A stretch of 64,000 nucleotides of DNA from contig NW_021833037.1 in NCBI RefSeq assembly GCF_006345805.1, positions 24,168 through 88,167 on the forward strand, given 5' to 3'. Positions within the stretch are counted from its first letter, which is position 1, and each line of letters opens with the position of its first letter. The position numbers and the translations under genes are program-made. Positions 1,039 to 56,795 of this stretch are shown here, one piece after another. The stretch is from Octopus sinensis (Eukaryota). Under the pieces are notes generated by a model, which searched no databases, was not told the origin of the DNA, and was given only the letters and a program-made list of their open reading frames with translations.

Positions 1039-1078
1039 GTATGTTGTATGTATGTATGAATGAATGAATGAATGAATG
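915..1078. repeat. (TA)n/(TATG)n/(TGAA)n compound microsatellite
   Basis: Direct reading of the sequence. Confidence 0.95.
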
Positions 1079-1268: not shown

Positions 1269-1496
1269 CTCTGTTTAATTCAGTGTAAATGTTGCCTGTC
1301 CCAAGCTTCAAAACAATATCAGAATGCTTTTTATTTGACAAATAGCATCTTCGATTACCGACTTCGAAGTCAGTCGACTGACAATATGAGTGTGTTTCAC
1401 AATGATATAAACACGTCGTATAATTAATATGATTGTATCCAATAACATTGTTACTAGGGAGATAAACCCTGTTAACAATATCCAAGGGGCATTTTC
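1269..1496 (-). CDS. PAN/Apple-domain exon B' (internal, phase 1-1, 228 nt)
   Basis: Acceptor ttttctcttttcag|, donor |gtaagt; KCPLDIVNRVYLPSNNVIGYNHINYTTCLYHCETHSYCQSTDFEVGNRRCYLSNKKHSDIVLKLGTGNIYTELNR has the PAN core C-x3-C-x5-C-x-S...C-x-L; paralog at 40672-40902. Confidence 0.8.
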
Positions 1497-1649
1497 CTGA
1501 AAAGAGAAAATGGATAAATGAATTTTTTTCTTCTTTTCATTTTCGTAAACATGAGGGGAGACGCGGTTATAGTGAAGTGTTTTATTATTTCGGATTAATG
1601 AAAATTTAGTACTATATTAATTACTTTCGGTTAATGAAAAATATTTAGC

Positions 1650-5110: not shown

Positions 5111-5132
5111 AATGTGGAGGCTTGTGGCTAGT

Positions 5133-7533: not shown

Positions 7534-9970
7534 GGAACTACAAAATAATAAACGTGCTTGATTTTCATCTGAAAAATAAAGCAAGCGAGAGAAAAGAGAT
7601 GGAAGAAGAAGAAGAAGAAGATAGAAAGAAAGAAGAAGAAGAAGAAAGAAAGAAAGGTGATCAGAATTGTGAATATTTTGATTTGATCCAGTTTTAGGAT
7701 TTTCATTCGTTTATGGATGAGTTACCCAATTTGGTTCCAAATTTCTTCATTTTCTACGTGAAAAAAATTAAATCTGTGTTTCACACATTCAGTTAATCTT
7801 CTGTAATTATTTTACGTAATTTAAGTAAAACTGGTATCATATCCTCATATAGTGTAAGATATCTTTTCGTCTCCCTCACAGACTAATGTCATCTACACAC
7901 AATTTAGATATTACACCCCAGACATGCATTATTTTCATCATCAAAGATATTGAGAATATTCACTGACAGTCACGTGACAAAAACCTAAACACACAACCTT
8001 TTGACAAAACGTTGCCTTTTCTCTTTTCTCCTTGGTAATCTTGTGTCTCAATCCCAAAATCTATGCTAAGCGCATCAATCAAACCTTTATTAGAACTTTC
8101 ACTCTCTGAAACGAAAACTCTACAAACAATTTTTTATCCACAGACACCATTCTACATTGACCAGAGAAATCGTAGAGACTTTTCAAATGCCGACAGTATT
8201 GTCTCTCTTTGGACTAAAACACAGAATACAAGTCAAGGAATAAAATAAACCCAGAAGATTCAAATTTGTTTACCGTCTCTATACTTGGTCGGCACAGTTC
8301 TTCTCAACTGATAAAAATAGGCATTATTTTCCATTGTTAGAATTTTCTCTGTTGAGTCATCTTCGTATAAAATACATCTTGGGCTTATCGTTCTGCTCAC
8401 GAAGGATTTACATGCAGAAGTTTCAAAACAATTCTTCGAACAGTTGAAGTCATCCACATCAAGTGTCGTCAATGTTTTAGCATCTTTCAGATCACAGTGT
8501 TGTACTTTTATAAAATACGTCAGATATTCAACTGTAACAAAAGCCAGGCAAATTAAACAACCCAAATAGGAAGACGTAAATAAAATATTGTGAAAATATA
8601 TAATATAAAGAAAGAGAATATTAAATGTTTGACGATCAACATCGGTATGTTTACTAGGAAGAAGTGATAAAGTTGTTACTACCATAGTGTAGGTACAAGG
8701 CATCTTGGAATATATTATCTGTTTAATAAATATGAGTTTTTAAAGTTGTTTAATTCTCATATTTAAATGACTCATATGTTATGTTCTATAATGTTCAGCG
8801 GTTGTGCATTGTAAAGTTTGCCCCAGTATCAGCACTTTGTCAAATTTAACAAAATGCTTAGAAACTGACGAAACACTGACGAAATGAAAATTATGTTCAG
8901 AATTGAATTCGTCATTATTCGGCGGTTTTATCTTGAACTTAGAATTTTAAATTTTCTTTTCAACTAATTTACTCTGAGAAGGAAAATATTTTCCTATACT
9001 GAACTTATAAATTACAATTTTGCGCTGTGATTTTTATAATGTTTATAGATATAGGTCTATATATTGATATAAATCTACTCACGTCCATTTCCAAATGTCA
9101 ATGAGATGTAGAAGAGAACTGCAACGAAAATTTATTTTGTAAAATATTTTATATTCCATGTCCACGTTTAGCATTAATTTACAAACATTAAAGACGAAAA
9201 GATTAAGAAAGAGAAGTGTTATATGCATAATTCGATAATAAATACGACGATGACCACCACCACATCATCACCATAAAAATATAATGCGAGAGTTGACCAC
9301 ATTCTTACTGCTGATCCATTCCTTGTCAAACCCAATTATGTTCTTAGAAGGAATCTATGTCCACTGGATCATGTACCATCATTTGGAGACAAGAACGGTT
9401 AGGAGGGATAAAACATCAAAGACGATACATAATAACCACCTGACCACAATCGGGGAAATGACAGACAAAGATATCAAAAAGAATCGTACAAGGATAAATT
9501 TATCAAAGAATGAAACAATAATATTTGTACTCAGATTGATATCGCAATTACTTTTTGCAAAAACATTTCCTGGTGAGAGATGTGGAAACTGTCAATATTC
9601 ACGATCCATGAATTTAAAATGAACAAGAATCAGGTATGAATTTGAAAACGATATGACTGAAGTACAAGTAAAAGCCATATCAACGATATTCTCAGTTCAA
9701 AAGATGATCCAGTTAAACCTGGCCCACGTGGTACGCAAGACACTTTCAATTTAGCCGTACATCTCAAATAGTTCCCTATATAATCACCGACCAATAAAAT
9801 ATTTACATTTTACACAACACATACTGTAAAGAATCACAGCGAAACAATGTACACAACACATTCTCCAGACATTAACTGATCCAATAAAATATTCATATAC
9901 ATATAAGAAATTAAAATTAAATGCAAACCTCTCAAATGAAATGCATCCAAAGATATTTTTATTCATGCAT
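7534..9970. repeat. Segmental duplication, copy 1 (partner 53492-55960)
   Basis: Collinear, near-identical non-simple sequence including PAN exon A; 3 differences in 173 intronic nt checked. Confidence 0.95.
8274..8531 (-). CDS. PAN/Apple-domain exon A' (internal, phase 1-1, 258 nt)
   Basis: Acceptor cttttgttacag|, donor |gtaaac; EYLTYFIKVQHCDLKDAKTLTTLDVDDFNCSKNCFETSACKSFVSRTISPRCILYEDDSTEKILTMENNAYFYQLRRTVPTKYRD has the PAN core C-x3-C-x5-C-x-SF...C-x-L...YFY. Confidence 0.8.
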
Positions 9971-10005
9971 AATATATATATATATATACATATCATATAT
10001 ATCTA

Positions 10006-20304: not shown

Positions 20305-22009
<1,705 letters not shown>

Positions 22010-24203: not shown

Positions 24204-24876
24204 AGTGGAGTATAAATTAAGACATGACAGAGTTGGCCAATATCTCCACTGGCTAATAAGTCGGCATTACAATATCAAAACTGCCGACAAGTGGTATAAT
24301 CACTACCCTGAGGCTGTAACTGAAGGAGAAAATGTAACTATTCTGTGGGACTTTCCAGTACATACAGACCGAACCATCAAGGCCAATAAACCAGATATTG
24401 TTGTGAAAGACCAAAACAATAAAGTTTGCTTATTGATCGACATGAGCATCCCCTGTGATCATAATATCTCAGCGAAAGAGTTTGACAAGCTCAGAAAATA
24501 TAAAGACCTACCCATTGAAATTGAGAAAATGTGGCATCTCAAGGCAGTTACAATACCAGTGATCGTAGGAGCACTAGGAATGATCAAGAAGGGAACCGAA
24601 AATTATATGAGAATGATCCCTGGCTTACCATCCCTGCAAGAAGTGCAAAAGATTGTCTTAACTGGTACATCACACGTATTGAGAAGAGCATTGTTGATGT
24701 GAGAACTGTTGCTGCTCATGTATTTTAATTTAACTTAAAAAAAAAAAAAACAAAATGAACGAACTACTGAGTTTGGTTTAATGGCCTACCAATGTATACT
24801 ATGAGTTTCTTTGCCCTAGGAGTCGGGAAGACACTCGGCAAGAAATGGAAGCAAATTTGAAAGAAGAAAAAAAAAA
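24204..24876 (+). mobile_element. R4/Dong-clade LINE family B, 3' fragment (restriction-like endonuclease) in (AAT)n
   Basis: RHD, KPDIV, IDM...K..KY motifs; 3' UTR matches 43050-43216; (AAT)n on both sides. Confidence 0.9.
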
Positions 24877-24902
24877 TAATAATAATAATAATGATAATAA
24901 TG

Positions 24903-24962
<60 letters not shown>

Positions 24963-26290: not shown

Positions 26291-26462
26291 ACTAACACTA
26301 TGAAAAACGTGGAAATTTTACCGGTGAGTGTGTTACATAATAAGGCACAAAAAGAAAATGACTCTCCCCAGACACAATAGAATATACTTCAACACACGAA
26401 CTCATATAAAGAATCTTGCAAACCAAATCCAAAAGCGAAACATTATTTGTATTATTATTATT

Positions 26463-29400
26463 CAGTAGTTTTATTTTATAGCGTGCTTTCACATCACTAC
26501 CGAGCGCAGCTCTGTGTGCCTTGGGTATGTGCTGTGATTTGTTGTGATGCTCTGATGGTTATTGTATGGAAAGTGTTCTGCGTAGGATGTGTGCAGTGCC
26601 TTGTAGTGCAATTTTCTGTATGTTATATGTGTTTGTAAGTCCTGGCGTTTTTGTTATGTATTTGTCTGAATATTTTTTTATCATGCCTAATGCACCTACT
26701 ATGATAGGAATCGTTTCTGTTTTCAGATTCCACATTCTAGTTACCTCTATTTCCAGGTCTTTGTATTTTGAGAGTTTCTCCATTTCTTTTAGAGACACGT
26801 TGACATCTGCCGGTATTGATACATCAATTAGAAAGTATTTTTTTTCTTCATGATCTCTGACAACTATATCTGGCCTGTTGGCCTTAATTTCTCTATCTGT
26901 GTGTATCAGCATATCCCAGAGTATGGTTGCTTTCTCGTATTCTGTGACCTTTTCTGGTGTGTGCCTATACCATCTTTTTTCTGTTGTTATTCCATAATGT
27001 TGGCATAGCTTCCAGTGTATGTAGGTTCCAACTCTGTCATGTCTGTGATATATTCCTTCTTAGCCAGGACTGGGCAGCTAGAGATAATATGATTTATTGT
27101 TTCTTGTCCATCTCCACATATTCTGCAGTTACTTGTTATATTTCTTTTCATTACATGTTTTTGGTAATTTCTGGTGGGGAGGCTTTGGTCTTGTGCTGCA
27201 ATTAAAAATCCCTCTGTTTCTGCTTTGAGTCCTGAGCTTCTCAACCATTGCTGGGATTTTTCTTTGTCTATTTCTTTTGCGTTTAGTTTAGTCCAGTATT
27301 TACCATGAAGGGGCTTTTCTTGCCATCGTTTTATCATGGTTCGTTGCTGTTCTATTTTTAGTTTGGATTTCATTTGTTTTATAGCTTTTGTTGTTTCTTC
27401 ATCTTCTTCTTCTTCTTCATGTTTATTAGGTGGTATGATTTCTTGTTTGTATTCGTCAGCTTCCTTAAATACTGAGAACAGTGTTTTGTTTTGCTCGTGT
27501 TTTGCCGCTATCTGGATCAGTTTTCCTTCCTTCTGAAGTAGATATTTTTGCAGTCCTATGGTGGTTATTTTATAGTAGTTTTCCAGGTGTATAAGGCCTC
27601 TACCACCTTCTATACGTTGTATATATAGTCTTTCTATGTCAAATTTTGGGTGATGCATCGTCGATCCTGTCATTATTTTTCTTGTTTTCCTATCTATTTT
27701 GGTCAGTTCATTTCGTGTCCAGTTAAGGATATTGTAGCTGTAACTTATAACTGGGACAGCTAAAGTGTTGATACCTATTATCTTGTTTTTAGCATTGAGC
27801 TCTGTTTTTAGTATTGATCTAACTCGTCTATAATATTCTTTTTTTATTTTCTCTTTCATTTGTGTGTGTTGTGTCTTATCTAGTTCATGGATTCCTAAGT
27901 ATTTGTAAGTTTGGCTTTGGTCTAATTCTTTTATTTCATTAGTTTTATCTAGTGTGATGTTGCTACTCTTAACTAGTTTTCCTTTTTTCATGGTTACTTT
28001 GGCGCATTTTTCTAATCCAAATTTCATATCTATTTCTTTGGTAAATCCATGAACTGTCTTTAATAGTGTTTCCAGCTGTTTGTCATTTGCAGCGTATAGT
28101 TTTAGGTCATCCATATATAAAAGGTGGCTGATCGTTTTGCCGTAACATTTATATCCGCATCCAGTTCTATTTAGTATATCAGATAGAGGTGACAGTGCCA
28201 AGCAGAAAAGGAGTGGAGAGAGCGTGTCTCCCTGGAATATTCCTCTTCTAATGGGGATGTCTTTGGTTTTCATGAGTCCCTCTTTTGTTTGGAGGTGTAG
28301 GACTGTTTGCCATTTATTCATAGAGTGCTCTATGAATTTTATGATTGTTGGTGCTACTTTGTTAATGGCTAGTGTTTCGAGGATCCATGTGTGGGGGATG
28401 CTATCAAACGCCTTTTTGTAGTCAATCCAGGCCATACTGAGGCCTTTCTTCTTTCTGTGGTTGTCTTCAGTTATGGCTTTATTAATCATTAGTTGATCTT
28501 TACAGCCATATAAGCCTTTGCGGCATCCTTTCTGCTCTTCTGGGAACAGTTTGTCTTCGTCCAGGTGTTTGTTCAACCTTTGCGATATCACTGCAGTAAA
28601 CGCCTTGAACATTGTAGGGAGACAGGTTATTGGTCTGTAGTTTTCTGGTTTTGCTGTCTCATTTGAATTGGGAATTAAGATGGTTTTCCCCTTCCTGAGC
28701 CATTCAGGCATTGCCTCTGGCTCTGCTAGTATGTTGTTAAAGTTTTCAGCCAGCTTTTTGTGCATTTCTGTTAGATATTTCAACCAGAAGTTGGGGATCT
28801 TGTCATGCCCAGGTGCCTTCCACTTGCTTAGTCTTTGCAGTGCCTGGGTGACCTCTTCAGTTGTTATGGGGGTCCAAAGTTGTTCAGATGCCGAGTTTGT
28901 TATTTTGATACTCCTTTTTTTTGGTTGTTCGTTCGCCGACCATATTTCTCTCCAGAATTCTTCCAATTCTTCTGCCGTTGGTGCTGCAGTTATTTCTATT
29001 TTATTTTTGCCAAGTTCTTGGTAGAACTTTTTGGGGTTGGAGTTGAACTTTTTGTTTTGTTCAAAGAAGCACTGGCGTTTCTCGTACCGGCGGATCCTTT
29101 GTGCTTTGGCAAGGATATCTTGCTTCAGCTTTTCTTTTATCTCAGGTAAATCTTTCTCTGTGATGTTATATTTGCGGAGTATTTTTGTTTTCTTTTTGTT
29201 GCTCAGTAGCGTTGATTGTTTGCTGATTTCATTAATAATCGACAGATCTTTTCTCATTTTTTGTATTTTGTTTTGGATGTTATTTATCCACAGGGTTTGT
29301 TTGGGTGGTGGTACTCCTGTTTGGATGGGTTTGAGTGAGTATCCAGCTTCTTTTGTGGCTGCAGTGGCTGCTGCGTATACTAAGTCATTTAGCTCAGTGA

Positions 29401-29776
29401 TATCGCTTTTTGTTTCAGTGGCTATTAGTTCCGTGACGGTTAGGTTTATGCTGTTTATAATTGGTGTTGTTGTTTCGTCTATTTTGATTCTTGGGAGGTA
29501 TGGTCGGTGGTCCATTTTGAGCTCTGTGGTTTTCAGTTCTTTGATTATTTTACTTTTTATATTATCATAATCATTAGGCTCCCCTTCGTTGTTTACATCG
29601 TGTTTGTTGGGAATGTTACGTTTGTTTTCGTGTTTTAATGTTTCAGTGTTTATATTACTGGGCATTGTTGTGTGGCTTCTATCTACATTTTCCTGGTATA
29701 TTTTTTCTTTTAGATGTTCTATTTCTATTTCTGATATTTTTTTTGTGTTGAGAATGTATCTTCGTACGTTAGCTAA
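26463..29776 (-). mobile_element. R4/Dong-clade LINE family A, young, 5'-truncated, RT + CCHC + REL endonuclease
   Basis: 892-aa ORF 26987-29665 (YMDDLKLY; CRICGDGQETINHIISSC), one frameshift near 27050, then RPDIV/IDV endonuclease; flanked by (AAT)n. Confidence 0.95.
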
Positions 29777-29812
29777 ATTATTATTATTATTATTATTATT
29801 ATATTATTATTA

Positions 29813-38097: not shown

Positions 38098-38333
38098 ATT
38101 TCATGGAGAAGTAAATAATTTTGGGGTGAATTCCATTAAAGTTCAGATCAGTTTCTTTAGTAGACACTTAGTGTTAGTATATGAAAAGGCGGTACATGTA
38201 GAAGATACCATACATAAACGTGAACAATCCAAGACCGAGCGGGCATACATTTGAGCCTCGATTACAAGGTTGTGATATGGATTTGGTTTGAAGGAAAAAG
38301 TTGAATAAGCTGTCTGGCCATTAATTTCTTTTT
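38098..38333 (-). pseudogene. PAN/Apple exon C with a 1-nt deletion (pseudo-exon or sequence error)
   Basis: Acceptor tttttctattgcag|, donor |gtgagc; KEINGQTAYSTFSFKPNPYHNLVIEAQMYARSVLDCSRLCMVSSTCTAFSYTNTKCLL, then with +1 A: KETDLNFNGIHPKIIYFSMK; length 236 = 237-1. Confidence 0.65.
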
Positions 38334-38870
38334 CTGCAATAGAAAAAATGGAAAGAGGAAACACAAGAAATATAAGAGCATAAATGAAATTATTTCTCTT
38401 CATTGACAAGGTACAAGGGAAACGAATAGATAGGGTCTATTAATTCGATAGATCGATGTTATTAATGTTCCGTTTGGACATCTTTAAGTTAGTGTGAACA
38501 GGGAGTGAGTTCCTGAGTGTTGCATAATCTAGAAAGGAAGGATTGGGGATAATAATTGATGGGGGATCTGGCTGGTGAAATAGCATGTATGACAGAAGGA
38601 GAAGGGGTATATTGCTGGTTATCTCAGAGGTAGAGTCGTTCTCGTATTACCAGCGAGATGCATTAAGGTATTTCTGAGCAAGTTAGTAATGAAGCGTGTT
38701 GAGATGTTTAATGACAGAGATGTTTAATGACAGGATTAATATTAACCCATCTGCCAGATTTTAAATGTACTTGTGTGTTAGTTTTACTACATCTTTTTGC
38801 AAGACTATTATTACGGTGATGAACTTGCATACCAAGTGACCTGATCTGAGATCGTGTGCTAGAACGAAAA

Positions 38871-39060
38871 CAATTGCAGTGTGGAAGGTGTTTATAAGCC
38901 ATTTAAGAAACACACAAAATCCGTTAGATTCACTTCAACATTTAAATTTAATTAGTCAAAATATTTTCGTCGCTTTCCGACCGTGACCTCTTCACTGACA
39001 AAATCCCGTGCTGCAGTGTGTTTCTTAAATGGCTTATAAACACATTCCACGCTGCAATTG
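38871..39060. repeat. 45-bp inverted repeat enclosing a hammerhead-like motif (Penelope-LTR-like)
   Basis: Arms 38871-38915 and 39016-39060, 2 mismatches. Confidence 0.75.
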
Positions 39061-39575
39061 TATTAATTATTTATTTATTTATTATCTATTTAACTAAAAA
39101 TTAAGACGCTAAGTAGAAATAATCATGAAATGAAGAAGAAGAAAGCGATATTTATAAATTTCTTTATTTTTTGCGTTGCGGAAGAAAGAGATATTTAAAA
39201 TTTTCAGTTTTGTTCGGCGTGCACTGGAGACAGAAGATCGATGAATTAAAGATCAGGAACAAGACACAGAATCAAAGAACACTAAAAATAAACAACTAAA
39301 TAAAAATGGTCTTACTATTAACGAAATAATAGGAGCCGAAAGCACATCCTACGGAGCTGATGTCCTTCAATGTATATGACTGACTGAAATTATTCCAAAG
39401 TTCTGAAATGGAAAAAGATGATGTAAGAACGCAGAAACTATGATCCACGGATTGTACCGTAATCTTTTCCGGAATACGGACTGTGATCGTAAGAAATACG
39501 TGATTTGTGAAAACTCGCGTAGCGCTGCATTAAAATATTTATAAAGTCCGTCTATGAAATATAATTAGTAATACG

Positions 39576-39680: not shown

Positions 39681-40478
39681 ACAACATTTGCCGGCGTTAT
39701 GGACACACCCTCACATAAGACGCAGCCCTATTTTACAAGGATATTTTACGGAAACAGCAAATGCTATACAGGATGTGAAACTCGTATTTCTGGATGTGAT
39801 GCTTTGTGTTACCGCGACAGACCACAAATTGGAAAATAAGGGAAAAAAGACTAAAGAACCAAACACAAATGAATGACCAAGAATGGAACACAACAAGAAG
39901 GAGGTGCTGTTGTACAAGCGATGCCTCCGACATATCATCAGGTCTGATCATTGCAAATGGCTGCCAGGTGGATGAAAGTTTAACATTCCATTCAACTTTC
40001 TAGGAGCATTTTTCATTTAGATAAAGAAGAAATGTTCATAAAATGTAACCTAGTTCTTTAAATAATGTAATTTATATATCAGATGTTGGGGAACGAGGTA
40101 AGTGAGGTGATGACAGCGTATCGTAATCAATCTTTCGTAAGTTTGTGATAACAGACTGTGATAATTCGGCTTGTGTTCAACATTTTATTATTAGTAACAC
40201 AATTTACTGTAATGATTTGGCTTGTTCTGATTATTCTTTTATGAGCAACAGTTTTTGCGCCAAGAGAACTTCCCAAGTACGCTCGTCCTGCTCCCTAGCC
40301 TACGGCGCTCGGCCTCCCTTCCGTAATGTGGCCACATTAGACGCATTTGATACATTTAAAAATAAGAAAAGCGCGTCCAATCTGCCGGCAAATACGGTAC
40401 ATACATACATGCATACATACATAATGTTCGTACGTATGCATGCATGTCTTTGAATGTATGTATGTATGTATGTATGTA

Positions 40479-40569
<91 letters not shown>

Positions 40570-40671
40570 CACACACACACACACATACAACAGCTAAAGG
40601 TGGTGCCTCAGTATAGTCTACGTAAACTGTGACTAAAAGTGCAATAAGATGTAAAGCAACTTTGCACTTAC

Positions 40672-40902
40672 CTCTGCTTATTTCAGTGTAAAGTGCACCT
40701 GTGCCACACCACACAGAAGAATCATCATGATTTTTACTTGACAAAATGCATTGTCCGCTACTTATACCGTAGTCAAACGATTGACAATTTGGATTTGCTT
40801 CACATCTATAGAAACACGCCGTGTAACTATGACCAGACGTGGCACTAATATCATTGTTACCAGGGAGAAAAGCGTTGTCAACTACATCCATGGGACATTT
40901 TC
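40672..40902 (-). CDS. PAN/Apple-domain exon B (internal, phase 1-1, 231 nt)
   Basis: Acceptor ttttcttctttcag|, donor |gtaagt; [76 protein letters not shown]. Confidence 0.82.
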
Positions 40903-41095
40903 CTGAAAGAAGAAAATGGATAAAGGAAGTTTTTCTTATTTTCGTTCTCGTAAGAATGGCGGGTGTGTACGCTTATAGTGGACCATTTTATTATTTTGGA
41001 TTAATGAATAATAATAATAATAATAATAATAAATAGATGAAAAATATATATTAATAATAATATTAATACTAATAATAATAATAATAATAATAATA

Positions 41096-41139
<44 letters not shown>

Positions 41140-41140
<1 letters not shown>

Positions 41141-43215
41141 GATCCTTGAGAACTGTCACAACAAGCGCAGAAATCTCAGCACCGCATGGATTGACTATAA
41201 AAAGGCCTTCGACAGTATACCGCATCCATGGATCTTGAGATCGCTGGACATCTTCAAAATTTCCCCTGTGATTTCAAACTTCCTGAAGCACAATATGTCT
41301 TTGTGGAATACGAATCTCCACTTATACTACTCTAATGGAGTACTTGCCTCAGAAAATATAAACATCAACTGTGGAATTTTTCAAGGTGACTCACTTTCAC
41401 CTTTAATATTCTGCATAGCCCTAATACCCCTTACAAGTGAATTAAACAGAACAGGGTATGGGTATAAAATTGCCAATAAAAAATTAAGCCATCTATTTTA
41501 TATGGATGACTTAAAACTTTATGGTAAAGACAATAATGAACTTGAAGGCCTATTGCGCACCGTGAAAGCATTCAGCGATGACATCGGGATGGAGTTTGGA
41601 CTTGAGAAGTGTGCCAAGGCCACTTTCCAGAAAGGGAAAGTGAAGACCACAAATTCAGTCGTGTTAGATGTTGACACAGTCATAAGAGAGCTTGAGCAAG
41701 AACAGACATACAAATATTTAGGGATAAATGAAGGCTCTGGTATTCAGCATGCAAGCATGAAAGAGAAAATCAGGAAGGAATGTTATAGGAGAGTTCGTGC
41801 AGTCCTGAATTCTGAACTAAATGCACGTAACAAGGTGTTAGCTATAAATTCCTTAGCAGTTCCAGTTGTTACTTATAGCTACAATGTGTTGAACTGGAAT
41901 ATGAGTGAAGTAAAGAATATAGATAGGAAAATACGCAAGCTGCTGAGTTGTAATAGGATGCACCATCCAAAGGCAGACGTAGATCGCCTTTACCTTCCCA
42001 GAGCCAAAGGAGGTCGAGGCCTGATCCAATTTGAACTAGCTTACAAAACAACCACAATTGGACTGGCCAAATATCTCGAAATATCGAATGACTGGATGCT
42101 AAAGCTCGTGGAAAATCACGAGAGACGAAAGAAGCTTCATTCTATCATAAAGGAAAACAAAACATTTGCTATTGATCTCGTGCAGGATACCCAAACTGAA
42201 CAACCCGAGGGAAGTACGGCAACTATTGTTGCAAAGAAGGTGAAAATGATGGCAATGAAAAAAGCGCACGAGCAATTGGCTGATAGGTGGGAGGAGAAAC
42301 CTCTGCACGGCAAATATGTGACCCGCAGCAAACAAGCTGATATTGACCAGAAGCAAACCCATCAGTGGCTACGGAGCTCAGGGCTAAAAGCAGAGAGCGA
42401 AGGTTTCATCCTGGCTGCTCAAGATCAAAGCCTATTAACCCGAACTACCAGGCCAATGTGATGAAAAATGGAGCAGACCCAAAATGCCGATTCTGCAACG
42501 ACATGATTGAAACAGTGGACCACCTAATCTCTGGATGTAAAGTCTTAGCACCAGTGGAGTATAAATTAAGACATGACAGAGTTGGCCAATATCTCCACTG
42601 GCTAATAAGTCGGCATTACAATATCAAAACTGCCGACAAGTGGTATAATCACCACCCTGAGGCTGTAACTGAAGGAGAAAATGTAACCATTCTGTGGGAC
42701 TTTCCAGTACATACAGACCGAACCATCAAGGCCAATAAACCAGATATTGTTGTGAAAGACCAAAACAATAAAGTTTGCTTATTGATCGACATGAGCATCC
42801 CCTGTGATCATAATATCTCAGCGAAAGAGTTTGACAAGCTCAGAAAATATAAGACTTACTCATTGAAATTGAGAAAATGTGGCATCTCAAGGCGGTTACA
42901 ATACCAGTGATCGTAGGAGCACTAGGAATGATCAAGAAGGGAACCGAAAATTATATGAGAATGAACCCTGGCTTACCATCCCTGCAAGAAGTGCAAAAGA
43001 TTGTCTTAACTGGTACATCACACGTATTGAGAAGAGCATTGTCGATGTGAGAACTGTTGCTGCTCATGTATTTTAATTTAACTTTAAAAAAAAATGAACG
43101 AACTACTGAGTTTGGTTTAATGGCCTATCAATATATACTATGAGTTTCTTTGCCCTAGGAGTCGGGAAGACACTCGGCAAGAAATAGAAGCAAGTTTGAA
43201 AGAAGAAAAAAAAAA

Positions 43216-43216
<1 letters not shown>
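41140..43216 (+). mobile_element. R4/Dong-clade LINE family B, 5'-truncated, after (AAT)n 41008-41139
   Basis: WIDYKKAFDS, GIFQGDSLSP, YMDDLKLY, CRFC...HLISGC, RHD, KPDIV. Confidence 0.93.
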
Positions 43217-43279
<63 letters not shown>

Positions 43280-44578
43280 GATAGGAAAATACGCAAGCTG
43301 CTGAGTTGTAATAGGATGCGCCACCCAAAGCAGACGTAGATCGCCTTTACCTTCCCAGAGACCAAGGAGGTCGAGGCCTGATCCAATTTGAACTAGCTTA
43401 CAAAACAACCACAATTGGACTGGCCAAATATCTCGAAATATCGAATGACTGGATGCTAAAGCTCGTGGAAAATCACGAGAGACGAAAGAAGCTTCATTCT
43501 ATCATAAAGGAAAACAAAAAATTTGCTATTGATCTCGTGCAGGATACCCAAGATGAACAACTCGAGGGAAGTACGGCAACTATTGTTGCAAAGAAGGTGA
43601 AAATGATGGCAGTGAAAAAGCGCACGAGCAATTGGCTGATAGGTGGGAGGAGAAACCTCTGCACGGCAAATATGTGACCCGCAGCAAACAAGCTGATGTT
43701 GACCAGAAGCAAACCATCAGTGGCTGCGGAGCTCAGGACTAAAAGCAGAGAGCGAAGGTTTCATCCTGGCTGCTCAAGATCAAAGCCTATTAACCCGGAA
43801 CTACCAGGCCAATGTGATGAAAAATGGAGCAGACCCAAAATGCCGATTCTGCAACGACATGATTGAAACAGTGGACCACCTAATCTCTGGATGTAAAGTC
43901 TTAGCACCAGTGGAGTATAAATTAAGACATGACAGAGTTGGCCAATATCTCCACTGGCTAATAAGTCGGCATTACAATATCAAAACTGCCGACAAGTGGT
44001 ATAATCACCACCCTGAGGCTGTAACTGAAGGAGAAAATGTAACCATTCTGTGGGACTTTCCAGTACATACAGACCGAACCATCAAGGCCAATAAACCAGA
44101 TATTGTTGTGAAAGACCAAAACAATAAAGTTTGCTTATTGATCGACATGAGCATCCCCTGTGATCATAATATCTCAGCGAAAGAGTTTGACAAGCTCAGA
44201 AAATATAAAGACCTACCCATTGAAATTGAGAAGATGTGGCATCTCAAGGCGGTTACAATACCAGTGATCGTAGGAGCACTAGGAATGATCAAGAAGGGAA
44301 CCGAAAATTATATGAGAATGATCCCTGGCTTACCATCCCTGAAAGAAGTGCAAAAGATTGTCTTAACTAGTACATCACACGTATTGAGAAGATGTGAGAA
44401 CTGTTGCTGCTCATGTATTTTAATTTAACTTTAAAAAAAAAAAAATTTTTTTTAAATGAACGAACTACTGAGTTTGGTTTAATGGCCTACCAATGTATAC
44501 TATGAGTTTCTTTGCCGTAGGAGTCGGGAAGACACTCGGCAAGAAATGGAAGCAAATTTGAAAGAAGGAAAAAAAAAA
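43280..44578 (+). mobile_element. Second family-B copy, shorter, between two (AAT)n tracts
   Basis: Near-identical to 41920-43216. Confidence 0.92.
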
Positions 44579-44603
44579 ATAATAATAATAATAATAATAA
44601 TAA

Positions 44604-47600
44604 GAGAGAACACCGGGGACGTTTAAGATGTAAGAAGGAAAATACAGAGCTCCGAAATGATGTATTTTGACTCGATATCATCTCCACGCAACACATGTAA
44701 ACATGCGTAGAACATCAAGATCATCCCCGACCCTAAACACCATGTACAAAGGAACTACGAAGAAATTAAATGCCACCGATACTATTCAACCCAAGAATAA
44801 CAATCGAGCGGTACGTACATTAAACTTACAACAAAAAATGTACGAAAAACTACACGTGCGAAATAATGTGACAACAGAAATAAACGGACCGGTACCCTAC
44901 GAAAATGACGACCGTCAAAATAATGGGCCGGACGTTGTACCTCATGTCCCGCAAATAAAACCCAAAAGACGTAAATGGACACGTGAGGAATACATTTCTA
45001 TCTTACACGCATACTTCACAGCAGTACTCTACCCAAAAAATGAAAATACAACAACACATACATATAAAATATGGAAGGAAAATAATAGAGATATAGACTT
45101 GGATACAGCAATGAACCCTAATAAATTAGCTAACGTACGAAGATACATTCTCAACACAAAAAAAATATCAGAAATAGAAATAGAACACCTAAAAGAAAAC
45201 ATACACCAGGAAAATGTAGATAGAAGCCACACAACAATGCCCAATAATATAAACACTGAAACTGTAAAACACGAAGACAAACGCAACATTCCCAGAAACA
45301 CGATGCAAACAACGAAGGGGAGCCTAATGATTATGATAATATAAAAAATAAAATAATCAAAGAACTGAAAACCACAGAGCTCAAAATGGACCACCGACCA
45401 TACCTCCCAAGAATCAAAATAAACAAAATAACAACACCTATTATAAACAGCATAAACCTAGCCGTCACTGAACTGATAGCCACTGAAACAAAAAAAAGTG
45501 ATATCACTGAGCTAAATAACCTAATATACGCAGCAGCCACTGCAGCCACAAAAGAAGCTGGATACTCACCCAAACCCGCCCAAACAGGAGTACCACCACC
45601 CAAACAAACCCTGTGGATAAATAACATCCAAAGCAAAATAAAAAAAATTAGAAAAGACCTGTCGATTCTTAATGAAATCAGCAAACAATCAACGCTACTG
45701 AGCAACAAAAAGAGAACAAAAATACTCCGCAAATATAACATCACACAGAAAGATTTGCCTGAAATAAAAGAAAAGCTGAAGCAAGATATCCTTGCCAAAG
45801 CACAAAGGATCCGCCGGTACAAGAAACGCCAACGCTTCTTTGAAGAAAACAAAAAGTTCAACTCCAACCCCCAAAAGTTCTACCAAGAACTGGGCAAAAA
45901 TAAAATAGAAGTCACTGCAGCACCAACGGCAGAAGAATTGGAAGAATTCTGGGGAGAAATATGGTCGGCGAACGAACCACCAAAAAAAAGGAGTATCAAA
46001 ATAACAAACTCGGCATCTGAACAACTTTGGACCCCCATAACAACTGAAGAGGTCACCCAGGCACTGCAAAGACTAAGCAACTGGAAGGCACCTGGGCATG
46101 ACAAGATCCCCAACTTCTGGTTGAAATATCTAACAGGAATGCACAAAAAGCTGGCTGAAAACTTTAACAACGTACTAGCAGAGCCAGAGACAATGCCTGA
46201 ATGGCTCACGAAGGGGAAAACCATCTTAATTCCCAAATCAAATGAAACAGATAAACCAGAAAACTACAGACCAATAACCTGCCTCCCTACTATGTTCAAG
46301 GCATTTACTGCAGTGATATCACAAAGGCTGAACAAGCACCTGGACGAAAACAAACTGTTCCCAGAAGAGCAGAAAGGATGCCGCAAAGGCTCATATGGCT
46401 GTAAAGATCAACTAATGATTAATAAAGCCATAACTGAAGACAGCCACAGAAAGAAGAAAGGCCTCAGTATGGCCTGGATTGACTACAAAAAGGCGTTTGA
46501 TAGCATCCCCCACACATGGATCCTCGAAACACTAGCCATTAACAAAGTAGCACCAACAATCATAAAATTCATAGAGCACTCTATGAATAAATGGCAAACA
46601 GTCCTACACCTCCAAACAAAAGAGGGACTCATGAAAACCAAAGACATCCCCATTAGAAGAGGAATATTCCAGGGAGACACGCTCTCTCCACTCCTTTTCT
46701 GCTTGGCACTGTCACCTCTATCTGATATGCTAAATAGAACTAGATGCGGATATAAATGTTACGGCAAAACGATCAGCCACCTTTTATATATGGATGACCT
46801 AAAACTATACGCTGCAAATGACAAACAGCTGGAAACACTATTAAAGACAGTTCATGGATTTACCAAAGAAATAAATATGAAATTTGGATTAGAAAAATGC
46901 GCCAAAGTAACCATGAAAAGAGGAAAACTAGTTAAGAGTAACAACATCACACTAGATAAAACCAATGAAATAAAAGAATTAGACCAAAGCCAAACTTACA
47001 AATACTTAGGAATCCATGAACTAGATAAGACACAACACACACAAATGAAAGAGAAAATTAAAAAAAGAATATTATAGACGAGTTAGATCAATACTAAACA
47101 CAGAGCTCAATGCTAAAAACAAGATAATAGGTATCAACACTTTAGCTGTCCCGGTTATAAGTTACAGCTACAATATCCTTAACTGGACACGAAATGAACT
47201 GACCAAAATAGATAGGAAAACAAGAAAAATAATGACAGGATCTACGATGCATCACCCAAAATCTGACATAGAAAGACTATATATACAACGTATAGAAGGT
47301 GGTAGAGGCCTTATACAGCTGGAAAACTACTATAAAATAACCACCATAGGACTGCAAAAATATCTACTTCAGAAGGAAGGAAAACTGATCCAGATAGCGG
47401 CAAAACACGAGCAAAACAAAAAACTGTTCTCAGTATTTAAGGAAGCTGACAAATACAAACAAGAAATCATACCACCTAATAAACATGAAGAAGAAGAAGA
47501 AGATGAAGAAACAACAAAGCTATAAAACAAATGAAATCCAAACTAAAAATAGAACAGCAACGAGCCATGATAAAACGATGGCAAGAAAAGCCCCTTCATG

Positions 47601-48439
47601 GTAAATACTGGACTAAACTAAACGCAAAAGAAATAGACAAAGAAAAATCCCAGCAATGGTTGAGAAGCTCAGGACTCAAAGCAGAAACAGAGGGATTTTT
47701 AATTGCAGCACAAGACCAAAGCCTCCCCACCAGAAATTACCAAAAACATGTAATGAAAAGAAATATTACAAGTAACTGCAGAATATGTGGAGATGGACAA
47801 GAAACAATAAATCATATTATCTCTAGCTGCCCAGTCCTGGCTAAGAAGGAATATATTCACAGACATGACAGAGTTGGAACCTACATACATTGGAAGCTAT
47901 GCCAACATTATGGAATAACAACAGAAAAAAGATGGTATAGGCACACACCAGAAAAGGTCACAGAAAACGAGAAAGCAACCATACTCTGGGATATGCCGAT
48001 ACACACAGATAGAGAAATTAAGGCCAACAGACCAGATATAGTTGTCAGAGATCATGAAGAAAAAAAATGCTTTCTAATTGATGTATCAATACCGGCTGAT
48101 GACAACGTGTCTCTAAAAGAAATGGAGAAACTCTCAAAATACAAAGACCTGGAAATAGAGGTAACTAGAATGTGGAATCTGAAAACAGAAACAATTCCTA
48201 TCATAGTAGGTGCATTAGGCATGATAAAAAAATATTCAGACAAATACATAACAAAAACACCAGGACTTACAATCACATATAACATACAGAAAATTGCACT
48301 ACTAGGCACTGCACACATCCTACGCAGAACACTTTCCATACAATAACCATCAAAGCATCACAACAAATCACAGCACATACCCAAGGCACACAGAGCTGCG
48401 CTCGGTAGTGAAGTGAAAGCACGCTATAAAATAAAACTA

Positions 48440-48442
<3 letters not shown>
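44604..48442 (+). mobile_element. R4/Dong-clade LINE family A, apparently full length (~3.8 kb); single ORF (Myb-like + RT + CCHC + REL) broken by about three 1-nt frameshifts
   Basis: ORFs 44667-45344 (RRKWTREEY), 45386-47077, 47232-47525 and 47531-48346; very close to the 26463-29776 copy; (AAT)n on both sides. Confidence 0.95.
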
Positions 48443-48479
<37 letters not shown>

Positions 48480-49029: not shown

Positions 49030-52000
49030 AAGAAGAATATAACATTGAAAGCTTCCCTGAGTTGGGCTCAGTTACCCCACCAATACTGAACCACTCGACA
49101 CTTCGAGCGCATCCGGGAAGGGCACCCTTCTCCCTCTCAAATCCATCGCCTACAGGCGCATTATTAGAGTAAGTCCACTCACACTGGCCATTTTCGCTAC
49201 ATTCACCCACCTCTTAGCACATTTCCTTGGAGGCAGCACTCATCTCTCTACCCTAATCTTTCTTTCCAAGTGAAATTTGAAAAAGTTGACATGGGATTGG
49301 TCGAAGAGAAAAGTGTCTGTCTTCAGTTTTATCAACCTGGTCCACCATACAACTCCTTTCGCTACTACGATCAGACAGAGGAAATTTGCCTACCCTCCAG
49401 GACCAACGGAAGGCGGCAGACCGATCTTCACTGTGGATTCAGCCAATAGCCGTATCCGTTCTACACGTGTTTAATCTAAATCAAAAATAATTTAAATAAA
49501 ATTATCCTCTCAACGTAAGTGAGACACATTACAATTATTCAAGCTGCTCAACATAACTCCGCAAGTCAGTAGTGCACGGACACTGGTCGATTCCTCGCTC
49601 TGCGCACATCTCGGTCAGGTCTGTCTGACAGCGCTTCCGCGCCTGTATAGTTTATCTCGAACCTGCAGTGCCCCCTGATAGCACTGGCAAGCAAGGATTT
49701 CTACTAGTTATCCATCGGTCCCAGCTCGAAAGTCCTCCTGAACAGACTGCTCAGTTGGACATCATCGATGTCTAGTGCCTCTCCAAGGGCGTCATCGCTC
49801 TTTCCCTCCATTAAGTTGCTATAGAAATCGAGAGTGGACGTTCCACACTTGAAGAGGGGGCGCTCCAGTTTGGCGAGGTATGAACGGAGGTAAGACATGG
49901 GCGAGATGTATGGATTCGCCACCTCCCCTCGACCTTTCAGTGATAGCTTCCTCGTAGCCCACTTCTGGGTGAGACTGGCTACCCTACTCGTCACCTCGTC
50001 CAAACTCTTATCCACCTGGAGGTCTGGTCCGAACCAAATCCAAACTTTACTGGTCCGTCCGTCTGGTGCCCAGCGACGCTGTTGGACGGCGTGGACTTGC
50101 CTCTCCAAGTGCCGAGTTGCAAGCCACCGACTTTCCCGGTTTAAGTTTTGCCCCTGTCAGCTTTTGATATTCCTCCAATGATGTGCCGACCACTTCGATT
50201 TCTGAGGCGTCCGACACCATCACGGTGATGTCATCCGCATAAGCCGACACATCCCTTCTGCGTCCCGGTTCGAGCGGGATTCTCTGCAGCAGCTCCAGTT
50301 TCCGCGGTAAAGGCTCAATAGTCAATACGTACAGAATGAAGAAGAGAGGATACCCTTGAGGGACTAATAGGGAGATCTGAAACAGATCTGAGAAGTGGCC
50401 TTTAACTTTGACCATTCAGTTGATGCTGCTGTGAATTGCAGCGATCCAGCCTCTGAAGACGAGGCCGAAGTCATCCGCTTTGAGAATAGCCTCCAGATAT
50501 CGATGGCTGACCCTATCGAATGCTTCCGATTGATCTAAATTGATCAGCGCCCCCACCGAAGCCAGGTTTACACACTACCCTTCCAATGATGTATCGCATG
50601 AGGTGGAGGCTGTTATTTATGGACCTGGTCGGGATTGCGCATGTTTGCGCCTCCTCAACCAAATCCTCGATGACAAGCGCTAACCTCTTGGACTAAATCC
50701 TAAACTCTGTGTTAAGCAGAGTTATGGGCCTGAAGTTATTTAATGTGACCCTCTTGATTTCATCTGTCTTTATCAACGTCACTATGCGTCGGTTCACAGA
50801 ACTCGGAATACGCCTGTTCTGCTGCCAGTTGCAGTAGAGCGCTTCGAAGAGATCGGAGAACAAGTCAAGCATATCTACATAAAGCTCATAGGGCAGACCA
50901 TCTAAACCAGGTGCCTTGCGACTTCTCCGGCCGACAAGGGCATCCTGAATTTCGGCTGAAGTTATCTGCAACCATGGCACACAGCGTCGACCGTCGAGAG
51001 ACGTGGCAAGCCGTCGTAGAACAGCTTTGATCCCCTCGTTTGTTAGAGAACGTGCCTTGGCTCTAACAATGCAACCTTCATATTTTGCATTGAAGAACTG
51101 GTCTAATACCAGTCTCGCTGCTAGCACTTCGGTTGCAATGCCACTACAAATAGCCTCGACTAGTTTTGCTACTAACTCCTCCTTCTTTCTATTTTTTTTC
51201 AAACGCTACTTCTTTGCTAAACCTTAGCGATATTACTCTAATCTTTCTTTTGAGAGCCACTCACCAACAGCTGTTGACGACTCCCTCCCCGGTCAACTTC
51301 TGCTTAATTAAATTGTTGACCTGGTCCCTGTAAGCCTTGAGTATCGGAAATGATATTTTCAACTTCCAGTATCCGGGTCCTAACCTACGCATCTTATCTA
51401 GTTCGACCGTACATATTACAAACTTATGATCTGAATAGGCGACCGTTTAAAAAGTGGACATCCCACACTATTACTATCTATCTTCCCACTGAAATTCCTA
51501 TCTATATACGATCTAGATGACCCTAGGCGGTTGGTCCAGGTCCACTCTGGCGCATTAGCGAAATCTCGTCGGTACCTGTTAGATAGTTGGAACTGGTTGA
51601 TCAGGAACTTGAGGCTTTTGCACCTGCCTCTTCTATCAGCTACACCCACACAATCCCAGCGTTGGTTTAAGATTCCGTGCCAGTCCCCACTAATAGTAGA
51701 GGACGAGACGTACATAGAAAGGCTTCCAGACGCCTAAACAAATCCAGCCGTTTGGCTCCAGTAGGGGCGTAGACGGCCAGCAGTCTAAAGACACCACCTT
51801 CACTATTGCTCACGTCGTGCTTGAAAAATAGGTCAAGAACCAATCTCGCCACCTTTCCTAAATGCTGCTTATCGCTTCCTAACTGGGTCTCCACCTACTC
51901 TAGATTTGTTTATCACTAATGCTCTACTAGCATCTCTATTGTAGGAGCACTTTTTAGAGTCATCCATCATCAGTTGTTGACGATTGCAGCCGTCAATTTC

Positions 52001-53491: not shown

Positions 53492-56400
53492 GAACTACAA
53501 AATAATAAATACAACGTGATTGATTTTCATCTGAAAAACATAAAGCAAGCGAGAGAAAAGAGATGGAAGGAAGAAAGAAAGAAAGAAAGATAGAAAGAAA
53601 GAAAGAAAGAAGAAAGAAAGAAAAAAGAAAGGTGATCAGAATTGTGAACAATTTTGATTTGATCCAGGTTGAGGATTTTCATTCGTTTATGGATGAGTTA
53701 CCCAATTTGGTTCCAAATTTCTTCATTTTATACGTGAAAAAAATTAAATCTGTGTTTCACACATTCAGTTAATCTTCTGTAATTATTTTACGCAATTTAA
53801 GTAAAACTCGTATCATATCCTCATATAGTGTAAGATATCTGTTCGTCTCCCTCACAGACTAATGTCATCTACACACAATTTAGATATTACACCCCAGACA
53901 TGCATTATTTTCATCATCAAAGATATTGAGAATATTCACTGACAGTCACGTGACAAAAACCTAAACACACAACCTTTTGACAAAACGTTGCCTTTTCTCT
54001 TTTCTCCTTGGTAATCTTGTGTCTCAATCCCAAATCTATGCTAAGCGCATCAATCAAACCTTTATTAGAACTTTCACTCTCTGAAACGAAAACTCTACAA
54101 ACAATTTTTTATCCACAGACACCATTCGACGACATTGACCAGAGAAATCGTAGAGACTTTTCAAATGCCGACAGTATTGTCTCTCTTTCGATTGAAACAT
54201 AGAATACAAGTCAAGGAATGAAATAAACCCAGAAGATTCAAATTTGTTTACCGTCTCTATACTTGGTCGGCACAGTTCTTCTCAACTGATAAAAATAGGC
54301 ATTATTTTCCCCTGTTAGAATTTTCTCTGTTGAGTCATTTTCGTATAAAATACATCTTGGACTTATCGTTCTGCTCACGAAGGATTTACATGCAGAAGTT
54401 TCAAAACACCTCTTCGAACAGTCGAAGGCATCCACATCAAGTGTCATCAATGTTTTAGCATCTTTCAGATCACAGTGTTGTACTTTTATAAAATACGTCA
54501 GATATTCAACTGTAACAAAAACCAGGCAAATTAAACAACCCAAATAGGAAGACGTAAATAAAATATTGTGAAAATATATAATATAAAGAAAGAGAATATT
54601 AAATGTTTGACGATCAACATTGGTATGTTTACTAGGAAGAAGTGATAAAGTTGTTACTACCATAGTGTAGGTACAAAGCATCTTGGAATATATTATCTGT
54701 TTAATAAATATGAGTTTTTAAAGTTGTTTAATTCTCATATTTAAATGATTCGTATGTTATGTTCTATAATGTTCAACGGTTGTGCATTGTAAAGTTTGCC
54801 CCAGTATCAGCACTTTGTCAAATTTAACAAAATGCTTAGAAACTGACGAAACACTGACGAAATGGAAATTATGTTCAGAATTGAATTCGTCATTATTCGG
54901 CGGTTTTATCTTGAACTTAGAATTTTAAATTTTCTTTTCAACTAATTTACTATGAGAAGGAAAATATTTTCCTATACTGAACTTATAAATTACAATTTTG
55001 CGCTGTGATTTTTATAATGTTTATAGATAAAGGTCTATATATTGATATAAATCTACTCACGTCCATTTCCAAATGTCAATGAGATGTAGAAGAGAACTGC
55101 AACGAAAATTTATTTTGTAAAATATTTTATTCCATGTCCACGTTTAACATTAATTTACAAACATTAAAGACGAAAAGATTAAGAAAGAGAAGTGTTATAT
55201 GCATAATTCGATAATAAATACGACGATGACCACCACCACATCACCATAAAAATATAATGCGAGAGTTGACCACATTCTTTCTGCTGATCCATTCCTTGTC
55301 AAACCCAATTATGTTCTTAGAAAGGAATCTATGTCCACTGGATCATGTACCATCATTTGGAGACAAGAACGGTTAGGAAGGGATAAAACATCAAAGACGA
55401 TACATAATAACCACCTGACCACAATCGGGGAAATGACAGACAAAGATATCAAAAAGAAATCGTACAAGGATAAATTTATCAAAGAATGAAACAATATTTG
55501 TACTCAGATTGATATCGCAATTACTTTTTGCAAAAAAATTTCCTGGTGAGAGATGTGGAAACTGTCAATATTCACGATCCATGAATTTAAAATGAACAAG
55601 AATCAGGTATGAATTTGAAAACGATATGACTGAAGTACAAGATAAAAGCCATATCAACGATATTCTCAGTTCAAAAGATGATCCAGTTAAACCCGGCCCA
55701 CATGGTACGCAAGACACTTTCAATTTAGCCGTACATCTCAAATAGTTCCCTATATAATCACCGACCAATAAAATATTTACATTTTACACACACACATACT
55801 GTAAAGAATCACAGCGAAACCATGTAACACAACACATTCTCCAGACATTAACTGATCCAATAAAAAAGACAGCATATATTAATCTATATTCAAGAAAATA
55901 AAATCTGAGTAAAAACCTCCTAAATGAAATGCATCGAAAGATATATTTACTCATGCATAAATAAGGTTACCGTCTAATGATACTGACTTGTGATTCAGTT
56001 TTTCGAGGTTGCACCATGGTTATACCGATTAAATGTGGGATAAATATAATAATAAGAAGGATGAAATTCAAGGATGGAATTTATAAATAGTTAATACACC
56101 GCTACGCGCGTTTCCACAAATCACACGATTTAAACATCGGACTCCGTATCCTTGAGATTGGTACAGTATAGTCCGTATTATCCATGGGCATCCGATTGAT
56201 CATCATCATTCATTCATTTAATCAGGCGATACTACATTAGTGGATGAATTCCAGAGGAACTCTGACTAAATTGGCCTTTATACTGGCAAGACAGGATGAA
56301 CATACTAGAATTATTGTTGTTATTGTTGTTATTATTATTATTGAGTGAGAGGGCAGTGCACGCAATCAAAGTGACACTGGAGTAAAATATACAAAGCCCA

Positions 56401-56795
56401 ATATACTCATGATCATAACTACCCGTCTGATAAAGGTACACCAGACACATGCATCACAGCCGTATGTGTGTTCTTGCGTGGTCTCACTCGTGATGGTTAA
56501 TTCTTAAACAACTTAAAACATAATATATTAAATATATAATAAAATGTTTACATACAAATAACCTGAAGACACTTCCTCAGCAACATCCTCTCTGTTTTCT
56601 GGGTAGAAATGGCTATCAAGAACGAAATGTTACTAGTTTAAATCTACTTTCTTTATAAAGGAAAATCATTGTATGAACTTTTCATCGATTTATCAATATC
56701 AGATGCCCTGAATTATTTACATTAATTATGAATATGATCTGCGTTTAAATGTATTAACATATTGACGTACAACTCACTTATGATGGTAAAATCAT
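53492..56795. repeat. Segmental duplication, copy 2
   Basis: Contiguous homolog of 7534-9970, 20305-20637 and 21612-21945. Confidence 0.92.
54252..54509 (-). CDS. PAN/Apple-domain exon A (internal, phase 1-1, 258 nt)
   Basis: Same splice sites as A'; EYLTYFIKVQHCDLKDAKTLMTLDVDAFDCSKRCFETSACKSFVSRTISPRCILYENDSTEKILTGENNAYFYQLRRTVPTKYRD. Confidence 0.8.

Follow-up and report, generated by a model that had tools for sequence, protein, structure and literature searches.

Gene organization at the locus

The window, that is, the whole 64-kb stretch of Octopus sinensis DNA that was analysed, contains two tandem paralogous genes, both on the minus strand: gene 2, which spans 56586-38143, and gene 1, which starts at 21727 and is cut off by the low end of the window. 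Each gene specifies a small secreted protein of approximately 277 aa, composed of a signal peptide followed by PAN/Apple modules A, B, and C. The exons of both genes, together with the intron flanks of the exons encoding the second module (B in gene 1 and B' in gene 2), are listed below in window coordinates.

56556-56586, minus strand: gene 2 coding exon 1, carrying the start codon and the beginning of the signal peptide (tblastn with P0109, splice check, CDS assembly)
55061-55096, minus strand: gene 2 coding exon 2, with the remainder of the signal peptide
54252-54509, minus strand: gene 2 exon A', first PAN module; protein identical to O. sinensis P0109/P0001
40672-40902, minus strand: gene 2 exon B', second PAN/Apple module; 231 nt, 76 codons plus split codons, phase 1-1
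39316-39402, minus strand: gene 2 exon C1', first part of the third PAN module (CDS assembly, splice check)
38143-38333, minus strand: gene 2 exon C2', remainder of the third PAN module and stop codon (CDS assembly, splice check)
21697-21727, minus strand: gene 1 coding exon 1, carrying the start codon and the beginning of the signal peptide
9083-9118, minus strand: gene 1 coding exon 2, signal peptide; identical in sequence to gene 2 exon 2
8274-8531, minus strand: gene 1 exon A, first PAN module (PAN_1 match)
1269-1496, minus strand: gene 1 exon B, second PAN module; 228 nt, 75 codons, phase 1-1 (PAN_1 match, splice sites)
Outside the window: gene 1 exons C1 and C2
40587-40671, minus strand: donor-side intron flank of B', 80% identical to 1184-1268
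40903-41008, minus strand: acceptor-side intron flank of B', 80% identical to 1497-1602
1184-1268, minus strand: donor-side intron flank of B (alignment with the B' flank)
1497-1602, minus strand: acceptor-side intron flank of B (alignment with the B' flank)

The gene 2 coding sequence assembled from the window is intact (834 nt, 277 aa; signal peptide plus three PAN modules), and its introns are all in phase 1 with AG/GT sites; since every intron is in phase 1, each PAN module is a cassette. The gene 1 exons that lie inside the window are all intact as well, and none of the family proteins found among annotated proteins carries the gene 1 B exon. Two other readings of the locus were considered and rejected. 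The proposal that B and B' are two modules of a single long multi-PAN gene fails because the annotated relatives are three-module proteins of 250-280 aa and because each copy possesses its own start codon and signal-peptide exons, while the possibility that the plus-strand open reading frames overlapping both B exons represent the true coding frame was dismissed because the PAN_1 match and the splice sites are found on the minus strand. Separately, the public O. sinensis models LOC118761606 and LOC118761180 look truncated at the gene 2 locus (window 38143-39402; positions 20170-21427 of L001, a second O. sinensis contig): one runs into the intron past C1, and in the other the frame is lost midway through exon B. 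An intact exon C2 with its stop codon is present in both the window and L001, giving the full three-module protein.

Divergence of the second-module exons

In the initial annotation, exons B and B' were described as paralogues that have diverged faster than their adjoining introns, mostly by amino acid replacement, and all three parts of this description hold. The codon alignment contains one 3-nt indel, and a recount gave 158 of 228 identical nucleotides, next to the approximately 157 reported earlier; the counts of 33 of 75 codons keeping the same residue, five synonymous changes, and 42 replaced codons were reproduced without alteration. For the donor-side intron, where 66 of 82 matching positions (approximately 80%) had been given, the recount is 68 of 85 (80%), and the acceptor-side flank, of which the annotation made no use, is 84/105 identical (80%). 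The earlier observation that the core Cys residues, splice sites, and reading frame are intact was likewise borne out: five Cys are conserved between B and B' (B' has a sixth, C65), an AG acceptor and a GTAAGT donor are present in both, and the frame is open.

When compared with both flanks, the exon is the more divergent (Fisher p = 0.014), and this excess resides in the first two codon positions, which differ at 53 of 150 sites (35.3%) versus 38 of 190 (20%) in the flanks (p = 0.002). Third positions, differing at 17 of 75 sites (22.7%), show no difference from the flanks (p = 0.62). Counted by position, the differences number 29, 24, and 17 of 75 at positions 1, 2, and 3, respectively, so that the third position is the most conserved. 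The acceleration of the exon is moderate, at 1.5-1.8 times the intron rate. Its spectrum also departs from that of the flanks, with transitions and transversions in a ratio of 31:39 in the exon versus 25:13 in the flanks (p = 0.044), transversions being relatively commoner in the exon. CpG decay is no explanation for the exon excess, as differences at CpG account for 7 of 70 in the exon and 8 of 38 in the intron.

After correction for multiple hits, the dN/dS of B and B' is 1.29 (NG86), 1.40 (YN00), or 1.43 (maximum likelihood), and all three point estimates therefore lie above 1, the value at or below which the initial annotation would have regarded its proposal as mistaken; the bootstrap 95% interval, however, is 0.66-2.78 and includes 1, with 23% of replicates at or below 1. 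A pairwise omega significantly above 1 was accordingly not reached, and the B/B' pair alone is no proof of omega >1. Neutral decay of the B exons is nonetheless unlikely given the open frame and the retention of the five Cys: in simulations of 70 random substitutions, the probability of acquiring no stop codon was 5-8%, that of keeping the five shared Cys was 0.8%, and that of both was approximately 0.1%.

The intron flanks as a neutral yardstick

The initial annotation had itself named special constraint on, or separate conversion of, the intron block as grounds for abandoning its proposal. Constraint was addressed with an orthologous pair, gene 2 of the window and the O. bimaculoides locus L002. 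In this comparison the exon B flanks differ by 9.3% and a 4.8-kb alignment of deeper non-coding DNA differs by 10.0% (p = 0.90), and because the flank rate equals that of the deeper non-coding DNA, the flanks are not specially conserved. Third codon positions differ by 10.7%, in line with the non-coding rate, while positions 1 and 2 differ by 15.3%, as opposed to 10.0% in the deep non-coding alignment (one-sided p = 0.03). The pattern noted between B and B' thus recurs in an independent comparison of orthologues. As for conversion, the same main groups are recovered in trees built from the flanks, from third positions, and from the whole exon, and this speaks against either the exon or the intron having been converted by itself. 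Among deeper family pairs, third positions also exceed the flanks in 33 of 36 pairs; this excess may reflect a bias in aligning the flanks or an exon-wide rise in rate.

For gene 1 and gene 2, which are without a long orthologous intron for comparison, the yardstick consists of the short flanks. Two longer candidates within the window were examined and set aside. The LINE block 2846-5112 / 44654-46817 (77-84% identical) may be an independent insertion, since a third member of its LINE family, 97% identical, occurs at 26442-29783. The colinear LINE-bearing block 5492-7112 / 49542-50953 (60-68% identical) was read as a pair of unrelated LINE copies, given that different LINE families in the window are equally alike; judged by sequence similarity, it is probably not orthologous, and if it were, the neutral yardstick would be older than the 20% of the flanks.

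Several features of the flanks themselves deserve mention. The alignable flanks of the B exons are bounded by microsatellites (window positions 1000-1080, 1617-2720, 40398-40585, and 41010-41100), of the kinds (TA)n, (TATG)n, (GAAT)n, (CA)n, and (AAT)n together with a 1.1-kb purine-rich GAA/GGA tract, and it is for this reason that the paralogous alignment ends where it does. At 40593-40618 and 1190-1215 on the minus strand, 55-80 nt past the exon B donor, the introns contain a motif (ACTGAGGC.CCACCTT with its neighbours). The motif is common to eight of nine paralogues, occurring at the same place in L002-L007, even where the remainder of the flank has diverged, and it could be a splicing signal or merely a slow-changing patch.

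A mosaic of duplicated blocks

The two genes are not uniformly similar along their length. A 2.4-kb block comprising exon 2, exon A, and intron (gene 1 copy at 7535-9972; gene 2 copy at 53492-55960) is 96% identical, versus 74% for the block containing exon B. Exons A and A' differ at 9 nt, corresponding to six replacements and one synonymous change, and the remaining block contains 1.9% mismatches. Flank distances at exon B amount to 0.20 between gene 1 and gene 2, 0.20 between gene 1 and L002, and 0.093 between gene 2 and L002, from which it follows that the B/B' split is approximately twice as old as the split between O. sinensis and O. bimaculoides and that the A block is younger; as the A block is younger than the species split, the 5' part has been homogenised by gene conversion or by a later partial duplication. 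The same disparity is seen throughout the family, with dS values of 0.02-0.34 in exon A and 0.15-1.2 in exon B.

The remainder of the window is largely occupied by LINE retrotransposon copies (RVT_1 and zf-RVT matches) and microsatellites; a search of Rfam returned no match in the window. Two LINE copies, at 26442-29783 on the minus strand and 45119-48463 on the plus strand, are 97% identical, and in one of them an open frame of 892 aa, counted from the first ATG, specifies reverse-transcriptase and zf-RVT domains, which suggests recent activity of a non-LTR retrotransposon. At 2846-5112 there is an older copy, cut at its 3' end and approximately 84% identical. In the intron between A' and B', a 1.3-kb unit inside another LINE-like element is tandemly duplicated (41913-43240 / 43272-44603, 95.8% identical), and a third partial copy of this unit (96% identical) is situated at 24204-24939.

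Tests of selection across the family

For family-wide tests, exons A, B, C1, and C2 were extracted with their splice sites from the DNA of eight loci, and codon models were fitted with our own likelihood code (GY94, F3x4 codon frequencies, neighbour-joining tree). The exon B data set comprises nine sequences from three genome assemblies and 76 codons. Under the one-ratio model M0, the nine B exons yield an omega of 0.89, which is not different from 1. Models that permit omega to vary among sites give another picture, in that M2a is preferred to M1a with a likelihood-ratio statistic (LRT) of 35.2 (p = 2e-8), with 29% of sites assigned to a class with omega 0.16 and 20% to a class with omega 5.2, on a data set limited to 76 codons of paralogues that are able to recombine, with a tree as long as 7-10 substitutions per codon. 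In a parametric bootstrap under the fitted M1a (98 data sets), the 95% quantile of the statistic was 3.9 and the maximum 11.0; these low null values indicate that the code behaves properly and place the observed statistic far outside the null. The suggestion in the initial annotation that diversifying selection had shaped these exons is thereby supported.

Recombination inflates site-model tests, and gene conversion is evident in the adjoining A block. The result for exon B was robust to the choice of sequences, columns, and topology, with the following outcomes.

Clade containing both window exons (4 sequences): LRT 11.05, p = 0.004
The other B-exon clade: LRT 32.8
All B exons except L003 and L005: LRT 23.8
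Ambiguous columns dropped: LRT 32.8
Intron-based topologies: LRT 34.7-34.8
Codons 1-38 on their own tree: LRT 7.9
Codons 39-76 on their own tree: LRT 42.8

The second half of exon B has an M0 omega of 1.56 (p = 0.052 against 1), and the lineage of gene 1 exhibits no special rise, its comparison with L004 (W1-L004) giving an omega of 0.61. Module C2, which served as a control, produced an omega of 0.66 and a non-significant LRT of 2.6, showing module C to be under ordinary constraint. Exon A returned an omega of 1.22 and an LRT of 26, a result to which little weight is given because gene conversion is visible in that exon.

The predicted PAN fold and the placement of selected sites

Both second modules are recognized by Pfam PAN_1 (PF00024), B' with E = 4.5e-10 and 39.7 bits and B with E = 1.2e-5 and 25.5 bits, relative to a cut-off of 21.4 bits; exon A scores exactly at the cut-off (E = 2.2e-4, 21.4 bits). 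The core residues C29, C33, C39, and C51 do not vary among the 12 sequences aligned and follow the CxxxC...C...C pattern of two predicted disulfides, and the N-terminal C2 is nearly invariant. The additional C65 of B' (codon 65, window 40708-40710, within VWCGTG) is restricted to B' and its alleles, being absent from all other paralogues, and it belongs to the selected class with a posterior of 0.95. C65, the last Cys of the module, could pair with the first one, the conserved N-terminal Cys, to give an apple-type third disulfide.

Modelling the entire O. bimaculoides orthologue with AF2 gave a poor result (pLDDT 47), and hence a single-domain model of B' was used, which is itself of moderate confidence (pLDDT 70, pTM 0.59). 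The predicted fold is that of a PAN domain, in which an alpha-helix (residues 26-35) packs on a five-stranded antiparallel sheet (b1 5-11, b2 19-21, b3 41-45, b4 51-54, b5 64-74). The top 50 Foldseek matches to this model are dominated by PAN/Apple domains (TMq 0.53-0.72), which fill all of the leading places; SML-2 ranks first (TMq 0.72), and the PAN domain of plasminogen, the N domain of HGF, the apple domains of prekallikrein and factor XI, and TgMIC4 are also present. A sequence search of solved structures retrieved the same families, with identities of at most approximately 22%.

Sites of exon B assigned to the selected class with posteriors above 0.95 are 20, 32, 45, 48, 52, 61, 62, 65, and 69, and those with posteriors of 0.8-0.95 are 15, 21, 47, 50, and 66. 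On the predicted fold, these fall in the b1-b2 loop, strand b2, the b3-b4 hairpin, the b4-b5 loop, and strand b5, with one helix position located between the two helix Cys; according to the AF2 model, then, the selected codons occupy mainly loops and edge strands and are concentrated in the latter half of module B, and the strongly conserved class of sites contains the Cys and core residues. A second allele is provided by contig L001, which is 99.53% identical to window positions 59588-36303 over 23.3 kb. Against this overall difference of 0.47%, gene 2 carries three coding differences, all of them replacements (A20D and F30I in B'; G5D in C2), and one of these, A20D, falls at selected site 20.

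An Octopus family and its relation to known systems

A word-indexed protein search with B' alone produced no match, and an exhaustive search recovered two close relatives, the other matches being generic multi-PAN proteins of at most 42% identity. By profile search, the family was extended to 14 proteins, all from Octopus (O. sinensis, O. vulgaris, and O. bimaculoides) and annotated as nothing more specific than "uncharacterized protein" or "Apple domain-containing protein". The genes cluster in both O. bimaculoides and O. sinensis, as seen from their positions on shared chromosomes: on O. bimaculoides CM046617.1, L002 (29.99 Mb) and L007 (30.03-30.05 Mb) are separated by approximately 25 kb and point in opposite directions, and three O. 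sinensis members are on one 59-Mb chromosome. A literature search for octopus or cephalopod apple or PAN domains and for the LOC identifiers of the family found no paper.

Exons whose replacements outrun their flanking introns, in tandem arrays and on a preserved Cys scaffold, are familiar from snake-venom phospholipase A2 isozymes, conotoxins, and abalone lysin. The octopus B exons share all three traits with these genes; they differ in that the effect is moderate and focused on one module, with the adjoining module kept uniform by gene conversion. A PAN-type module with hypervariable regions, under diversifying selection and engaged in recognition, is also present in the S-domain (PAN_2-containing) receptor kinases and SLG of Brassica self-incompatibility. 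These plant proteins are receptor kinases with a different PAN subfamily, and their recognition is allelic.

Within the PAN/Apple superfamily, which includes the plasminogen and HGF N domains, the apple domains of factor XI and prekallikrein, and apicomplexan microneme proteins, the octopus modules are placed by their HMM match, core Cys, and predicted fold, as well as by the use of one symmetric phase-1 exon per module and of the PAN module as a putative binding unit. What sets the octopus protein apart is the combination of a small secreted protein built of three PAN modules only, an occurrence limited to Octopus among the proteins found, and a hypervariable second module. The closest solved structures, whether judged from sequence (E = 0.0065) or from fold (TMq 0.72, rmsd 2.3 A), are the galactose-binding lectins SML-2 of Sarcocystis muris and MIC4 of Toxoplasma, which are likewise small secreted proteins with tandem apple domains. 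The organisms are unrelated and the identity is low; the likeness in sequence and modelled fold may serve as a lead for assays rather than as an indication of function. Another small secreted invertebrate PAN protein, the leech antiplatelet protein (LAPP), binds collagen and belongs to a lineage-specific family (PMC7191736). LAPP and other leech salivary PAN proteins resemble the octopus family in being small, secreted, invertebrate, and lineage-specific, but LAPP has one PAN domain, compared with three modules in octopus, and its tissue and target are known.

Interpretation

Diversifying selection on module B of a secreted, tandemly duplicated, and partly homogenised three-PAN family is the best explanation for these observations, and we consider it likely to be correct. 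Following duplication, module B retained its scaffold (the four invariant core Cys, the N-terminal Cys, the core aromatics, the frame, and the splice sites), and approximately one-fifth of its codons underwent repeated residue changes, at several times the synonymous rate; the 5' part (exon 2, exon A, and intron) is kept near-identical by gene conversion or later partial duplication. PAN modules elsewhere bind proteins or sugars (PMC7191736), and this precedent, together with the position of the selected sites on the model, suggests that the variable B residues may form a binding surface, in keeping with the ligand-binding surface that the initial annotation had proposed by comparison with immune, recognition, venom, or gamete proteins. 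The family would then be a secreted repertoire of binding proteins that differ in specificity, the binding partner presumably changing over time or differing between paralogues.

The principal alternative is relaxed constraint, under which module B, or a whole gene copy, would drift near-neutrally with an omega of approximately 1 and without any advantage to the new residues. The breadth of the pairwise interval and the family M0 omega of 0.89 are compatible with such drift, as is the fact that the 33 identical residues equal the expectation from 70 randomly placed substitutions; moreover, gene 1 is without an annotated protein and its 3' exons lie beyond the window. Drift, however, would have to preserve the frame and five Cys at a joint probability of approximately 0.001, and it cannot make positions 1 and 2 outpace non-coding DNA, as they do here. 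M1a, which already allows neutral sites, is rejected against M2a, and the gene 1 lineage displays no special rise in omega. We therefore regard relaxed constraint as unlikely.

The pattern could also be an artefact: other B exons might have donated short conversion tracts, or the exon might mutate at a raised rate, and the clustered changes so introduced would mimic selection in site models and make the exon seem older than its introns. The evidence of conversion next door (96% identity in the A block versus 74% in the B block), the much lower dS of exon A than exon B across the family, and the many pairs in which third positions exceed the flanks all lend this idea some substance. It appears quite improbable even so, as the trees of flanks, third positions, and whole exon concur on the main groups, the likelihood-ratio result holds for each exon half on its own tree and for each clade, and conversion from constrained paralogues would add mainly synonymous changes, whereas the B/B' excess is at positions 1 and 2. 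It might also be supposed that the splice-proximal flanks are constrained or homogenised, such that their 80% identity understates the age of the duplication; the motif common to most paralogues past the donor and the low identity of the colinear LINE-bearing block would fit this view. Against it stand the agreement of orthologous flanks with the deeper non-coding DNA, the match of B/B' third positions to the flanks, and the finding that 60-68% is simply the similarity between different LINE families, so that the block is probably not orthologous. Slow introns are, on this showing, a very remote explanation.

Diversifying selection on module B leads to a more far-reaching proposal, which we put forward tentatively and hold to be possible but doubtful: the genes could constitute an Octopus-specific recognition repertoire in which a constant part (signal peptide and module A, maintained by conversion) is joined to a variable module B that escapes conversion and is diversified by selection. 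If so, each copy would present a different binding surface on a common chassis, and the members might serve as secreted lectins of the immune system, as binders in saliva or venom, as cues for chemotactile sensing or self-recognition, or as factors acting in mating or on gametes.

That exons outrun introns in tandem secreted families is a known phenomenon, and the type of evolution described here has already been recognized in venoms, immune genes, and gamete proteins; the Octopus PAN case is new, and its value is that of a new instance rather than a new principle. The approximately 14 codons identified in module B offer concrete targets for study. Octopus genomes contain many lineage-specific genes without an assigned role, the PAN family among them, and a secreted, tandemly arranged family of binding modules, with a selected module beside a uniform one, is a candidate cephalopod recognition or interaction system that may operate in immunity, prey handling, or chemical or mate recognition.
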